DNA of 63,573 nucleotides, the filler included, from Ministeria vibrans ATCC 50519 (Eukaryota > Protista > Filasterea), in assembly GCA_943704425.1 (NCBI GenBank). It is 6 parts of 6 records of this genome, joined end to end, with 100 filler letters (N's around TTAATTAATTAA, not from the genome) between each part and the next. Parts side by side here need not be neighbours in the genome. Positions count along the whole stretch, not along the records: positions 40,317 to 46,617 come from CALSCP010001780.1; 5 more parts are not named here. The stretch is one strand, 5' to 3'. The position numbers were made by a program, and so were the translations under genes. Positions 40,109 through 46,771 of the stretch are shown piece by piece. Position 1 is the stretch's first letter; every line of letters starts with the position of its first letter. The notes under the pieces are model-generated. The model was not told where the DNA came from. It saw only the letters and a program-made list of their open reading frames with translations, and did not search any database.

Positions 40109-40322
40109 TGAAAAGTTTACTTAACTTTTCTTGGAAACCCCAAAATCGTCGCAGGGGGGACCGCTCGAAAAACTCAAACAGTGAAAAATAGAAAAGGTCG
40201 CGTCACCATGGCTCACNNNNNNNNNNNNNNNNNNNNNNNNNNNNNNNNNNNNNNNNNNNNTTAATTAATTAANNNNNNNNNNNNNNNNNNNNNNNNNNNN
40301 NNNNNNNNNNNNNNNNGCGCAC

Positions 40323-40348
40323 AACCCTAACCCTAACCCTAACCCTAA
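40323..40348. repeat. Telomere-type repeat (CCCTAA)4
   Basis: aaccctaaccctaaccctaaccctaa, 6 nt from the contig start, C-rich strand at the left end. Confidence 0.8.
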
Positions 40349-40363
40349 GAAACCACTTTTCAC

Positions 40364-41450
40364 ATGTCTACTGGCGAACTACCTGCGTATTACGTGAAGA
40401 ATGGGCAATTGCATCTGGATCTAAACACTGACGTCAAAGGAGTACGGGTCGCTGTGTTTGAACAATCTTTGTGTGTTGGCATCGACATGGGGACAATTGC
40501 GTGCAACGCAAACGCCTTCACTCTTTCTGAGTGCGAATTCTCCAGCGCATCTTTTGACAATGGGCAGTCGTCTGGTGCGCGAATTCTGAATGGCGGGAAT
40601 AAGCTAACACACGCGGACTATGTTCACCATGTATGTTGCCGCATCGATGTGCAACGACGTCTCGTTTCTCTCGCTAGCGATCTCTCGGAACCCGGCGCCT
40701 CCTTCCTGCGCAACAATTTTGAAGGCATCACAGATCTATCGCCAAACGCCGCGCATTGAACCTTATCAGCGTGCTCGAGGAGATGATTTGTCGGCGTTTG
40801 TGAATCGTTTGCAGCGTGGCGCGTCTAAAACGGCTCATCACTAACATTACTGTGAACGATCTCGCGTTCCATATGGCGACTCAATCGTTTTCATAAAGTG
40901 ACTCGTTCAAATTGGCCTCAATGGCCTGCAAAGGGCACCACGAATTCCCGTGAATGAGACTGCGAAAGGCAAACACTCTAAAAACACCTTAAAAACAATA
41001 ATAATTATTATTATTATCAATAATATTATAATGACGTATTCATAATAATTAATAATATAATAAATATTATTAAATTTATTATTATTTTTTCTTCGACAAT
41101 TCTGTCATGATGACAATAACTGATTAACGACTCCGTGACTTGGTATGTTAGATTGGCCACCGTCAAAGGCTTTCAAGTCTTTCTCATTCATGAGTACCTC
41201 ACAAACCAGACGTCCTCGCGCTGTTACTCACAGCTCATTGATGTGACCGGCCGACATTCACATCGTCGCCGCTGTCGAGCAACGTTCAAAATGTGCACCA
41301 AAAAGAAGTGCACCAACGATGGCAAGCACACCCGTATCTTCGACAAGGACCTCAGTGCCCCCCGCCTGCCTCCTGGACATTAATCTCAGCGATCTCTGCC
41401 GCAATGGTCGTCCCGCTCGCTTCTGCTGCCGCTCAGGAATGCGAATGTGA
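40364..41450 (+). pseudogene. Decayed Fanzor (eukaryotic TnpB-like RuvC nuclease), C-terminal half
   Basis: In order: RuvC-I CVGIDMG; helix YQRAR..LSAFVNRL; VPYGD; CKGHHEFP*MRLRK; an AT-rich intron-like insert; LATVKGFQVFLIHEYLTNQTSSRC (RuvC-II E); KMCTKKKC; IFDKDLSA (RuvC-III D); then after a +1 frameshift ACLLDINLSDLCRNGRPARFC. Confidence 0.75.
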
Positions 41451-41790
41451 AAGAGAGAATGAAGAAAAAATGTCAAGCAGGGCGGAAAGCGAGTTTGAGT
41501 TTACAGCAATGCAGAAAACGGGGGTTAAACAAGCAAATTTCAAACTGCAATTGACAACAAAATGAAAAGTAATATCAAACCAATATACTCCTCTTATTCA
41601 TCTCTCGCAAAAAACTTGACATCTTAATCATTTTCTGTCTTCATTTCTCTGTTCAATCAACTCCAATCTTTCTGCTGTGAGCCGGTCAACGGATCTACCG
41701 TCAAATTCGTAAATCCCTTGTTACCGTTGGCAGGGTTAACGACAAGCGCCTCTGGACCCACGCAACCATATACTTTTAATAATGCAACGG

Positions 41791-42976
41791 TCACCTCACC
41801 CCATACAACGTGAAGCAGGGCAGCTCGGGCAAGCGCTCCTGAAGCACACGGGCAAACTCGGGGTCACCACACGACTCGATTGTGTCCACGAGCAGCCGAC
41901 GTTGCCAGCAAGCGACTCGGGTCGCACTCACATCATCTGCCGCCTCCATCACGTCCTCGAGCCGGGCAATATCATCCTCGTCACCCCGCTCCATGTCCTT
42001 GTCGTTCACGGTTTCCTCGCCACGACCACCACCCTGCTGCTGCCTCCGCTTTCTCTCTTCTCCACCGCCACCGCCACCCCCACCGCCGCCATCCTCGACC
42101 TCCAAAATGGTCCCGAACGGACCTCGCAGCAAAGACGGTCGCGACGGTGACGCCATCCAGTCGTAGAGGGCCTTCTGGAGCTGCTCGGCGCACTTAAACC
42201 GGACCTTTCGCAGCACAACGCCTTCTCTTCCCTCCATTCTCATCTTCACTTGAAAGAACAGTCGGGGCGTGTGCAAAAAGGCGGCGCAGTCGTAGTTGGA
42301 GACAAGGTTTGCGCAGACACACTCGCCCTGCACCAGCGGCAAAATATCGTTGTGATTGTTCGAGACAGCCGCCTTGAGTTCGACGACAGCAACGAGATGG
42401 GGCCGCGACGGCTCTATGAACCGCTCGCCGTGGAGTGTGCGGTTGAAGGCGACGTCGGTGGTGCCGGTCAGATGGAGGTGGGGCGCCGAGAGCAGACAGC
42501 GATTACCGGTAGCATCAAAGGGGCCGTTCCACGAAGGGTCGCGCGGGATGATCTACATACACACAGTATGAGACAGATAAGGAAAGAAAAAAGCTCACCT
42601 GAGCCTGCAAATGCTCGATAAACAGCGGCTGCACGTCCTTCTCGACGACATTGTTGAAACAATAGGGGATGCCGAGACCGCCCAGATCTGGATCGGCGTT
42701 CTCAAAGCGTGACCGCCCAATTCCGGCACTGAATAAGCGCGAGTCGAGCTTTTCATATGAGAGGTTCGACAGAGCGACTGTCTCGGCTGTGACAGTGGGA
42801 GGTAGTTGAGACGATGGCATTTTCGTCTGGGACTTACTCTTCTCTTGCAGGAGGGTTTTCATGTCTGCTTGAATTTCCTCAAGGCGGGTTTTCATGCCTG
42901 CCTCAAGTTCGCTCAGGGATTCGCTCAGGACGTCTGTGTTTGTTCTTAGGGTTGGACGCAACACAATAAAAAACAA
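41791..42976 (-). CDS. Crinkler-type (CR effector) PD-(D/E)xK restriction-endonuclease-fold protein; ends uncertain
   Basis: Removing a 46-nt GT-AG intron (42553-42598) gives EKDVQPLFIEHL..LTGTTDVAF..VAVVELK..LVQGECVCAN, preceded by a short coiled coil. Confidence 0.6.
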
Positions 42977-43639
42977 CTATCATTCAATTTAAAAAGCGCC
43001 AAAATTACACGACGTAACAAGCTTCGATCGGAAGAGCAAGGCGAACGCAACGGTACATACTGCAGTCAATGTAAAACGGGGTAGTATTAGACACAAAGGG
43101 CTCGAAAGGCGGGGGAGAAAAAGGAAGAGGAAACAAGTCCCCTCCCCCCTCAAAAAAAANNNNNNNNNNNNNNNNNNNNNNNNNNNNNNNNNNNNNNNNN
43201 NNNNNNNNNNNNNNNNNNNNNNNNNNNNNNNNNNNNNNNNNNNNNNNNNNNNNNNNNNNNNNNNNNNNNNNNNNNNNNNNNNNNNNNNNNNNNNNNNNNN
43301 NNNNNNNNNNNNNNNNNNNNNNNNNNNNNNNNNNNNNNNNNNNNNNNNNNNNNNNNNNNNNNNNNNNNNNNNNNNNNNNNNNNNNNNNNNNNNNNNNNNN
43401 NNNNNNNNNNNNNNNNNNNNNNNNNNNNNNNNNNNNNNNNNNNNNNNNNNNNNNNNNNNNNNNNNNNNNNNNNNNNNNNNNNNNNNNNNNNNNNNNNNNN
43501 NNNNNNNNNNNNNNNNNNNNNNNNNNNNNAAAAAAAACAAGCAGTGACGCGAACAAGGTGGGGATCAAAGAAAGGTAAGAAAAAAAAAAGAAGAAAAAAA
43601 AGGGACTCGGGAAACGTGATCTGGTGAACGTGAACTCAC

Positions 43640-44010
43640 CTTGTGACTGCTTGTTAGCCGCCTGCGCTTGCTCAGCCTTCGCTTCCTGAACATACGCGAT
43701 TTCTATCAAATCATCGAAAGCAATGAGCAACAGCTGTTTGAGGTCGCTGTTTAACTTACGAACTCCGATGAACAGGGCTTCGACGTGTTCGGCGTTGGGG
43801 GTCACGCCCTTGGTCTTGAGTGTGCAAGTGATGTCATCGGCAAGGACTTTGGACATGGTTTGCCCTGGGCGAGCGAGTTTTGGAAAAAGGACCAAATGGT
43901 TTTCCCAGAGATGCACCGAAAGTGCTCTGCCACCTTCGTTGAGCGTCGAAGGATCCTCTCGAGCTTGCTGACGAGGTCATTGTTCGTGCCAAAAGTGATT
44001 ACCATCATAT
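43640..44010 (-). other. Coding-like orphan exon (possibly frameshifted) ending in a GT donor; may be an upstream part of the adjacent nuclease gene
   Basis: HLWENHLVLFPKL...EQAQAANKQSQ|gtgag; helical composition; no recognisable motif. Confidence 0.3.
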
Positions 44011-46771
44011 CATGGGTGACAAGAAAGGATGATGGTTCGAGGTGTTCTGATGCGTACGGTCGGTGTAGGGCGTCTCAATCGATACCGCCATGATTATGGT
44101 GGACCTTCAAACGAAAACTGAAAAACTATAATTATGTGAGTAAAAATACAACCGTCAGAAACCCGTGTCGCAAGTACTCGCAACTAGCTAGCAAGACACA
44201 CTTCATTCACATGTAGAGTGTAGAATGAAGCGTACGGGCAAATGGTTGGTGCAAACCCCCCCCCCCCCCCCCCAAAAAAAAAAAAAAAACGTTGCGACTC
44301 CAGAAACATGAGCTGCTTACTCGGCAAGTGCCATGTAACTCAGGAGTTAGGAGTAGTGATGCCAGCCAATGGAGGCCAAATAAAAAATCGAGTTGATTGG
44401 CACAACATGATAGTTGCACAAAAGGAAAACAAAAACGAAGACGCGAGAAAAACTGTGTTGGGCGTGAACTGCAAGCAAGACACCGCCATGCACTGCACAT
44501 CACAATGCAATGCCATCGGGGAGGCAGATAAAAACAGCACAAAGAGGGACGCTGAGGGCGAGAGCAGAGAATGTCTTGGTTCGTTCTGTTGCAGTTGCGA
44601 GACATGGCTTCTACCGCACCACCGAGTCGTCAAACGCACATGGGAAACCGCAGATACAAAGCAACACCTCAGCATACGGCCATCGAAGGCGAGAAACGAG
44701 CCGCAATCGGCCCACAAATCGTCTCTGTGATGAGAAGCGCAATCTCAAAACAGAAAGACCCGATATTGACGGACGACAGAACGGTAACGAAGCAGCGAAA
44801 CATACGACACGATGCGTGTGGGTGCTCGGATTATTGTGTGACTTACGGAGTAGAGAAGAATATATTAAATAATGTCTTGAATCAGTTGTGACTTGTGAGT
44901 TGAGTCTTGAGAGTTGACTCTAAGTCTTGATCTTGAAGGCTTCCTCGTTTGAATGTCGTGGATATTCCAATTTCTCGTTGATTATATTGATGATTGTTGA
45001 AGTGTCAGCTTAATTCAGCTTCATCGTCTTCCCGCTTAAATCGGCAAAATACGTCAGAACTCAGAAGTCTGTTTCACAGTTTTTTTGAGCAACGATCATT
45101 CGTTTTCTTCTGTGACCGTAACTCTACGCAGGAGTATGCAGGTCAAGATATTGTGACTTATGAGTATTTTTCAATCTCAAGAACCATGGGCAGTCCAGCA
45201 TACCGACACGTGAGATTTGGAGGTTGTGGTGAGTGGCACGGATCAGATAGAAATCAGATATCATTCTCACGATAACCATGACTGAACCAGCTCCCCAACT
45301 GCTTCGCCCAATGGCCGATACACACACGCACTCCAAGCCCCAACGTTTGTCGTATTGGCCTTCTAGTGGCATCCTGGGCGGGAGCTCACACTTGCACTTC
45401 TCCCAATGGAATACCAAATTCGGTCTTTGTCGCTTGTGTGAAGACAGACAAGCAAGCTGGTCGCTGTTCATGCTTGGAGTGACTGTTGACACCGTCCATG
45501 AGACGTCGTCCAGTCGGATGTCACAACTGCTGTTTGTTTGTTCCGTATCAGCCCATCTATATAGGGGTTCCATTATCACTGCCGGCTCTCTTTTCTGCGC
45601 ACTTCGCACTTCGCTCTGCGTATTTCTCGTTTCTTTTCAATCTTTGCTTCTCGACTTGGACTATATTCGGCCTTATCACCAGCTTGGTATTGCATTCCTT
45701 TGCGCGCTGGTCAATGCATGCGTTTGGAAAACGTTTAACGATAGAAGAAAAAGAAAAATAATATTCTTCTCCCTGGAACTTGTGTTCGCTGCCCTCGTCC
45801 CAACCGTTTTAGACCCCAAACATTCAGCTATTTCAGCAAGCACGACGTACGGTTCTTTCTTAGCTGGCTGAGGAATGGGAGCAGCCCTCCAGTGCGCTTG
45901 CCCCCGAGGAATCACTTTCGAACACCAGGCCGCCCTGCCTGGTTGTAGAGGCTCTCAGCTCGAGTGAGTGCCAGAACAAGCCTTTAAACTCATTAATGAT
46001 TCAAGAGACGTGCAGTGATTTGTCGTGCACATGATGGGGTCATGTGAGCATTCAAGGCGTGAGGGATCAATTTGATATAAGAATTCGAAATTGGTGCCTC
46101 GACGACGTATAATTTCGACGAACTCATTCGATTTTTAATTTTCACGTCTACCATCGTCTAACAGGAGGACAGGCTACAGGCGGGCAACACCCAATTCCCC
46201 AGGACTTTCTGTTACCCTCCTGTTACCCACCAGGGGATATAAGGAGTTCATTAGGAGACGATAAAGAGTTTATCGAAATAATCCGAAAAGAATCCACCCC
46301 GAAATTACCTATGATTCATTTGATACCCATCGTCGCTTCGCTTGCCTTCTTGTTCTTCCCGACGGTTGCAGCTGTGTCGTGTCGTCCTAACACAAACGTA
46401 TTCGATGTTGTTGTTAGCCACGGCGAGGCCTGCGAATTCGGCATTTCTCACTCGTTCACGACGGTACGAAGGCAGTGGCGTCGACCGCAGAGTTATTATT
46501 CATTATGCTGTTGTTAATTGTTATTGCCTGCCCATTCACCGCATTCGGCATTATGGACTCTTATCTTCGAGTCCGGTGGTGCAAGACCCTGAGAAGGAAT
46601 CAGTGAAACCTTCGTGGNNNNNNNNNNNNNNNNNNNNNNNNNNNNNNNNNNNNNNNNNNNNTTAATTAATTAANNNNNNNNNNNNNNNNNNNNNNNNNNN
46701 NNNNNNNNNNNNNNNNNAAAAAAAAAAAAAAAAAACAAGTGTCAACGAACCATCGATGCGTCTGTTTTGTA

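Follow-up and report, generated by a model that had tools for sequence, protein, structure and literature searches.

Fanzors are eukaryotic RNA-guided nucleases, relevant both to genome editing and to the history of TnpB and Cas12. They are widespread, multi-copy and intron-bearing cargo of eukaryotic transposons and giant viruses (PMC10530073; PMC10711439). A DPG motif at RuvC-I is near-exclusive in Fanzors, and a Glu six residues ahead of the zinc finger (E-x6-CxxC) is their hallmark (PMC10711439). Fanzor1 proteins of known structure include those of Spizellomyces punctatus (SpuFz1, PDB 8GKH), Parasitella parasitica and Guillardia theta (PDB 9CF0/9CER). Here we describe a locus at 40349-41450 (+) of the window, a 63,573-nucleotide stretch of DNA (filler included), which is very probably a dead, 5′-truncated copy of a eukaryotic Fanzor1 gene. 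It is the broken 3′ two-fifths of such a gene and ends 5′ at a telomere-like repeat; the gene type is known, this copy is dead, and the branch of the Fanzor1 family to which it belongs is poorly sampled.

The sequence-only reading of this DNA had picked out a hidden Fanzor from a series of motifs scattered over several short ORFs, and three-frame translation placed every one of these motifs where it had been read (Table 1). Across all six frames of the 6.3-kb piece we found a single instance each of G[IVL]D.G, E[YF].T[SNT]Q and [RK]D[ILVF][NS]A. The three are correctly ordered on the + strand, and shuffles give expectations of 0.24, 0.017 and 0.09 occurrences, respectively. The motif set exceeds chance.

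Table 1. Features of the Fanzor1-like locus and its surroundings, numbered along the window.
Feature	Position	Strand	Remarks
Analysed piece	40317-46617		6.3 kb; GC 0.46; N gap 43160-43529
(CCCTAA)4 telomere-type repeat	40325-40348		C-rich strand, as expected at a left chromosome end
Putative RuvC-I piece	40349-40756	+	136 aa; open in frame 2; CVGIDMG; possible TDG-like motif
CVGIDMG	40472-40492	+	Frame 2; Asp 40484-86
Frameshift, frame 2 to 1	about 40723-40756	+	
Frame-1 piece with AKRRALNLISVLEEM	40723-40800	+	Helical region between RuvC-I and YGD strand
Frame-0 stretch, DDLSAFVNRL to VPYGDSIVF	40782-40898	+	From L001 DNA alignment
Frameshift, frame 1 to 0	about 40785-40800	+	32 nt vs. 39 nt in L001
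In-frame TAA	40842-44	+	
YGD (within VPYGD)	40872-40880	+	Frame 0
Frameshift, frame 0 to 1	about 40895-40905	+	8-nt length difference vs. L001
Upstream-exon end, FKLASMACKGHHEFP, stop, MRLRK	40897-40968	+	Frame 1
In-frame TGA, between KGHHEFP and MRLRK	40951-53	+	Frame 1; TGT (Cys) in L001
AT-rich intron, 183 nt	40969-41151	+	From L001 exon-edge alignment; GC dips to 0.32
GC donor and acceptor phase defect	40969-70; 41150-51	+	
Frame-2 exon with RLATVKGFQVFLIHEY	41153-41360	+	Alternative Glu, degenerate zinc ribbon, RuvC-III
IHEYLTNQTSSRC	from 41186	+	Frame 2
First zinc-finger Cys to Ser		+	In the frame-2 exon
KMCTKKKC, then IFDKDLSA		+	Frame 2; final D 41348-50
Imperfect 15-nt tandem duplication (TGCACCAA twice)	41288-41316	+	Inside second zinc-finger knuckle
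C6 run with +1 frameshift, frame 2 to 0	41358-41363	+	L001 aligns on both sides; sole frameshift in a long homopolymer
C-terminal tail, ACLLDINLS to NGRPARFC	41364-41450	+	Frame 0, 3′ of the C6 run; stop TGA 41448-50

At the level of sequence, homology to Fanzor1-type proteins is established for the C-terminal part, comprising the alternative RuvC-II Glu, the zinc ribbon and RuvC-III, because, out of 248 stop-free six-frame pieces, two independent profiles matched a single one, the 87-aa piece 41120-41380 (E 4.9e-6 and 6.6e-6; next-best pieces 0.39 and 0.94). These profiles were made from metagenomic and giant-virus Fanzor1-like proteins, with the locus itself and its two relatives P0003 and P0004 (described below) excluded against circularity; with P0003 and P0004 added, the E-value became 1.2e-12 and the hhalign probability 97.6%. 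The Fanzor ancestry proposed in the sequence-only reading was thus upheld for the C-terminal half. All searches were run piece by piece and exon by exon.

A phmmer (HMMER) search of the C-terminal piece against 1.84 billion protein representatives (E<=1e-3) gave four matches, two of which are true relatives: P0003 (94 aa, E 2.6e-4, 47% identity by phmmer and 41% by BLASTP) and P0004 (214 aa, E 9.4e-4). Both exceed the gathering score of Pfam PF07282 (Cas12f1-like TNB). The other two, P0001 and P0002, were rejected as long repeat proteins (MG2, DUF3011 arrays) matched in 5 and 12 stretches. The nearest clusters to the 87-aa piece in the ESM Atlas were PF07282 fragment clusters of Nucleocytoviricota and Mucoromycota (0.94, recognition 3001). 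Pfam reported no family for any piece of the locus, and the individual pieces gave nothing significant against PDB (phmmer) and PHROGs. No homologue of the C-terminal piece was returned by a word-index protein search, nor did a viral-contig scan and a first metagenome scan, both confirmed against the short piece, give any match.

The Glu at 41192-94 stands six residues ahead of the zinc-finger position (E-YLTNQT-S-SR-C), with exact spacing, so that the Fanzor hallmark reads E-x6-SxxC here. An intact CxxC...CxxC ribbon is not present: the first Cys is replaced by Ser and the second pair is C-x4-C, the CTKKKC that takes the place of the CxxC of P0003 being due to the 15-nt duplication. The RuvC-III Asp (41348-50) is kept in DKDLSA, in which KD-L-S-A aligns with RD-x-N-A-A of Fanzor1. 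As to the earlier claim that all three catalytic acids are retained, it held for this Asp and for the Glu, while the RuvC-I Asp is a putative assignment.

P0003 is encoded on L001, a eukaryote-like 776-bp contig (JAOQFC010163442.1) of GCA_025491055.1, a highly fragmented NCBI assembly, and P0004 on two JGI metagenome contigs (L002:937-1581 and L003:161-805). A metagenome scan seeded with these two proteins recovered L004 (643-aa ORF), L011 (634 aa) and the partial L005-L008, together with the bacterial TnpBs L009, L010 and L012, and a viral scan yielded the giant-virus relatives L013-L027. The Fanzor1 signature of this series consists of TDG.., (I/V)DPG, (F/Y)G(N/D/S), (D/N)EY.T.Q.C..C, NRD.NAA.NI and RP..L. 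We combined nine metagenomic and viral relatives with P0004, P0003 and the piece of our locus into a 12-row family profile, A5. It matched the Fanzor1 structures of Parasitella parasitica (E 1.9e-45), Spizellomyces punctatus (E 2.1e-45) and Guillardia theta (E 4.5e-33), followed by Mimivirus L79 (E 8e-9) and by Cas12f and TnpB (E 1e-5 and weaker). For P0004 and for the L004 protein alike, the best PDB match is a Fanzor1.

P0004 is a compact 214-aa ORF with GIDPG, FGNG, DEY.TSQ.C..C and NRDINAA but without WED/REC; only about 55 aa lie between its RuvC-I and the FGNG strand, and its best PDB match is the Parasitella Fanzor1 at E 0.013. Truncation of the exon call could account for this, or the protein may be a miniature Fanzor-like one. 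L024, L025 and L026, all from the giant-virus MAG GVMAG-M-3300017792-3, are paralogous ORFs of about 980 aa each that combine a Fanzor1-like C terminus with a long insertion after the TDG motif; they are unusually large and multicopy in one viral genome.

Comparison with L001 accounts for the two interruptions of the 3′ part. P0003 aligns in frame 2 up to DKD(L/I)SA and in frame 0 from (A/V)C..I..LS to RPARFC, with 12 of 21 residues identical (E 5e-6), and tblastx against L001 gave four colinear HSPs (sum E 1.8e-13), in frame 2 to 41359 and in frame 0 from 41367. The frameshift at the C run is confirmed because the relative aligns across it in two frames; aligned lengths become equal if one base is removed, in agreement with the one extra C that had been read there. 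The tail that follows is the counterpart of the G.RP..l tail at the Fanzor1 C terminus.

The interruption upstream is of another kind. L001 carries a phase-0 intron (202-329), its upstream exon ending in PCAMIRK before GTAACG, a polypyrimidine tract and CAG, and the AT-rich stretch of our locus lies at the same codon boundary. Since both exon edges align with L001 (..FP*MRLRK|GC.. and ..TTAG|A-TTG-GCC..), 40969-41151 is a conserved-position spliceosomal intron and not a product of decay; introns are found in many Fanzors (PMC10530073). The splice donor is GC, not GT, and the sole AG puts the next exon one base out of phase. Decay had been held to hide the gene across short ORFs; this stands for the frameshifts and stops, but part of the hiddenness is due to a normal intron. 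The intron itself, the 5′ truncation and the DMG in place of DPG at RuvC-I had all been missed in the sequence-only reading. An intron at the L001 boundary and an adjoining CCCTAA repeat point to a eukaryotic or giant-virus host.

The 136-aa N-terminal piece found no match in Pfam, PDB or the word-index protein search, no significant match in the Atlas (recognition 1472), and nothing significant by BLASTP to L004, L011 and P0004. In its best local hhalign match to the family profile, which coincides exactly with the RuvC-I columns (E 0.21), ..CVGIDMGT is paired with ..LVGIDPGR, and a possible TDG-like motif, TDVKGV, lies 16 aa upstream of CVGIDMG. The RuvC-I motif is GIDMG, that is, with the Asp of DPG kept and its Pro replaced by Met. 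After removal of the intron, about 175 codons separate this Asp from the Glu, vs. 159 in L004. Judged by the uniqueness, order and spacing of its motifs only, the GIDMG-containing stretch is likely the RuvC-I region. The frame-1 piece that follows is colinear by eye with exon 1 of L001 and with P0004, though insignificant alone, as is the tblastn comparison of L001 exon 1 with the locus (E 0.73). YGD is the counterpart of the (F/Y)G(N/D/S) strand of Fanzor1 relatives, and hhalign places this middle piece best at profile columns 423-435 (E 0.3). The strongest local matches of the N-terminal, middle and C-terminal pieces are thus colinear along the profile (columns 313-322, 423-435 and 473-533).

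The open frame of the remnant begins directly after the CCCTAA units, ahead of which 8 unrelated bases (gcgcacaa) remain at the edge of the piece. About 43 residues precede GIDMG, compared with 330-390 aa before DPG in L004, L011, L014 and L017. A full-length Fanzor1 (WED/REC, about 600 aa) is not what we found: the N-terminal part of about 320 aa is absent, and the full-length profile detected no N-terminal part anywhere in the 6.3-kb piece. The gene appears to have been cut some 25 codons before the TDG motif, at the place where (CCCTAA)4 now stands. Chromosome breakage with telomere healing, or a subtelomeric rearrangement, would be the simplest explanation of such a truncation. For the CCCTAA tract, a trimmed telomere, an interstitial telomeric repeat and an assembly artefact are all conceivable, and it does not by itself prove a true chromosome end.

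As for the surroundings, no Rfam match, no convincing terminal repeats and no transposase among the ORFs were found in the piece, and its other ORFs gave no family or homologue. Three ORFs looked up as exact proteins matched no record, and there is no sign that the contig is human. The 3′ flank has no omegaRNA-like structure and folds worse than shuffles (z +1.75; a single decayed copy). A 253-codon open stretch at 41794-42552 (-) converges on the Fanzor remnant; it has a GC of about 0.6, a run of 10 Gly and a ..TTD..(30 aa)..VVELK.. pattern that by eye recalls PD-(D/E)xK nucleases. Pfam gave no match and the word search no homologue, so the stretch is an orphan or non-coding. The 370-N gap at 43160-43529 is flanked by long A/G-rich and poly-A/poly-C runs (e.g., 43139-43159 and 44261-44281), which makes its surroundings a low-complexity region in which the assembly is unreliable.

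The copy is a pseudogene, as had been read, because its frame is shifted at least four times and interrupted by two stops, its splice donor is GC, and zinc-finger cysteines have been lost; the splice defects include the acceptor phase as well. The opposite reading would be a live Fanzor gene that only looks broken, through errors of assembly, additional short introns or a variant code (e.g., TGA as Cys or Trp). We regard this as very unlikely. Some of the indels could indeed be assembly errors, as the piece contains an N gap and one frameshift falls in the C6 homopolymer; the TGA aligns with a Cys codon of L001, and one real intron is present. Yet the three other frameshifts lie outside long homopolymers, in sequence for which the base-by-base alignment to L001 exon 1 shows no intron-like gaps, and neither the TAA stop at 40842 nor the loss of the first zinc-finger Cys, the duplication that disrupts the second knuckle or the absence of about 320 N-terminal residues from the whole piece fits a live gene. 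Euplotes is the known lineage in which TGA encodes Cys, and the CCCTAA telomere type does not fit it. A variant genetic code or programmed frameshifting was rejected on the same grounds. The locus would be unable to yield a working nuclease.

Giant viruses carry many Fanzor1-like genes, and the remnant might be an endogenised segment of a virus of the Nucleocytoviricota in place of a cellular transposon. Many of the recovered relatives are on giant-virus MAG contigs and the top Atlas clusters are mostly Nucleocytoviricota; nevertheless, the nearest relative, P0003, comes from a highly fragmented NCBI assembly and its gene carries a canonical spliceosomal intron, the viral relatives are far more remote, none of the viral loci having passed tblastn with the piece of our locus, and no neighbouring ORF has a viral or other family match. 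We consider such an origin improbable, if somewhat less so than a live gene. There is next to no chance of a prokaryotic origin, in which a TnpB would derive from a contaminating bacterium or from recent transfer. The NCBIfam guided_TnpB profile does match the C-terminal piece weakly (E 0.051, positions 329-373 of 389), but the score for NF040570 is 12.8 bits vs. a cut-off of 100 and neither PF07282 nor PF01385 was returned by Pfam for any piece, which does not place it in the prokaryotic TnpB family. Moreover, a Glu six residues before the zinc finger is the Fanzor/pro-Fanzor arrangement (PMC10711439), the family profile favours Fanzor1 structures over TnpB by about 40 orders of magnitude, and both the spliceosomal intron and the telomere-type repeat speak against it. 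Equally negligible is the possibility that short motifs came together by chance in non-coding subtelomeric DNA without any TnpB/Fanzor ancestry. The N-terminal and middle pieces, having no significant match, would allow it; against it, the C-terminal piece is significant vs. independent profiles and among 1.84 billion proteins, and the alignment to the closest relative changes frame at the predicted frameshift and continues beyond it. For 41153-41447, chance assembly is already refuted by the protein, profile and tblastx matches.

With the locus taken as a dead Fanzor1 copy, family knowledge suggests what its intact ancestor would have been: a nuclease of about 600 aa, carried as transposon cargo, that would have bound a guide (omega) RNA and cut matching DNA beside a short motif. 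Its RuvC site would have been formed by the RuvC-I Asp, the repositioned Glu six residues before the zinc ribbon and the RuvC-III Asp. Together with P0003 the locus belongs to a sparsely sampled subfamily marked by DKD-(I/L)-SA and RPARFC. It is conceivable, though we offer this only tentatively, that the host and the organism of GCA_025491055.1 carry an almost unsampled and strongly divergent Fanzor1 clade (DKD-(I/L)-SA, RPARFC and possibly DMG) with intact, active, intron-bearing copies elsewhere. The dead copy has no activity of its own, but it marks a genome as having been host to a divergent Fanzor1 lineage of which very few relatives can be detected. Intact members with unusual active-site motifs may therefore exist in the full assembly. 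ORF-based annotation misses such genes once introns and decay have split them into short pieces.

Compared with known systems, the locus has the RuvC and zinc-ribbon (TNB, PF07282) core in common with prokaryotic TnpB (IS200/IS605, IS607) and Cas12f, but differs from these in the position of its Glu, which is that of Fanzors and not the canonical one, and in its eukaryotic context of intron and telomere-type repeat. With Fanzor1 it has in common the hydrophobic strand, (D/N/H)EY.T.Q, (R/K)D..A and the G.RP..(l/f) tail. Unlike Fanzor1, it is dead, without WED/REC, with DMG instead of DPG, with its zinc-finger cysteines partly lost and with no recognisable TAM, omegaRNA or element ends, and its RuvC-III reads DKD-L-S-A vs. 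NRD-x-N-A-A. The closest relative found is P0003 on L001, with 41% identity over the last exon (BLASTP) and 12 of 21 residues in the tail. L001 is a gene fragment on a tiny contig and P0003 a singleton cluster; in contrast to our locus, both exons are open, CxxC...CxxC is kept and the intron is GT..AG. The two agree in DKD-(I/L)-SA, in RPARFC and in an intron at the same codon boundary, and the DKD-(I/L)-SA variant, being common to both, is probably a trait of the subfamily.
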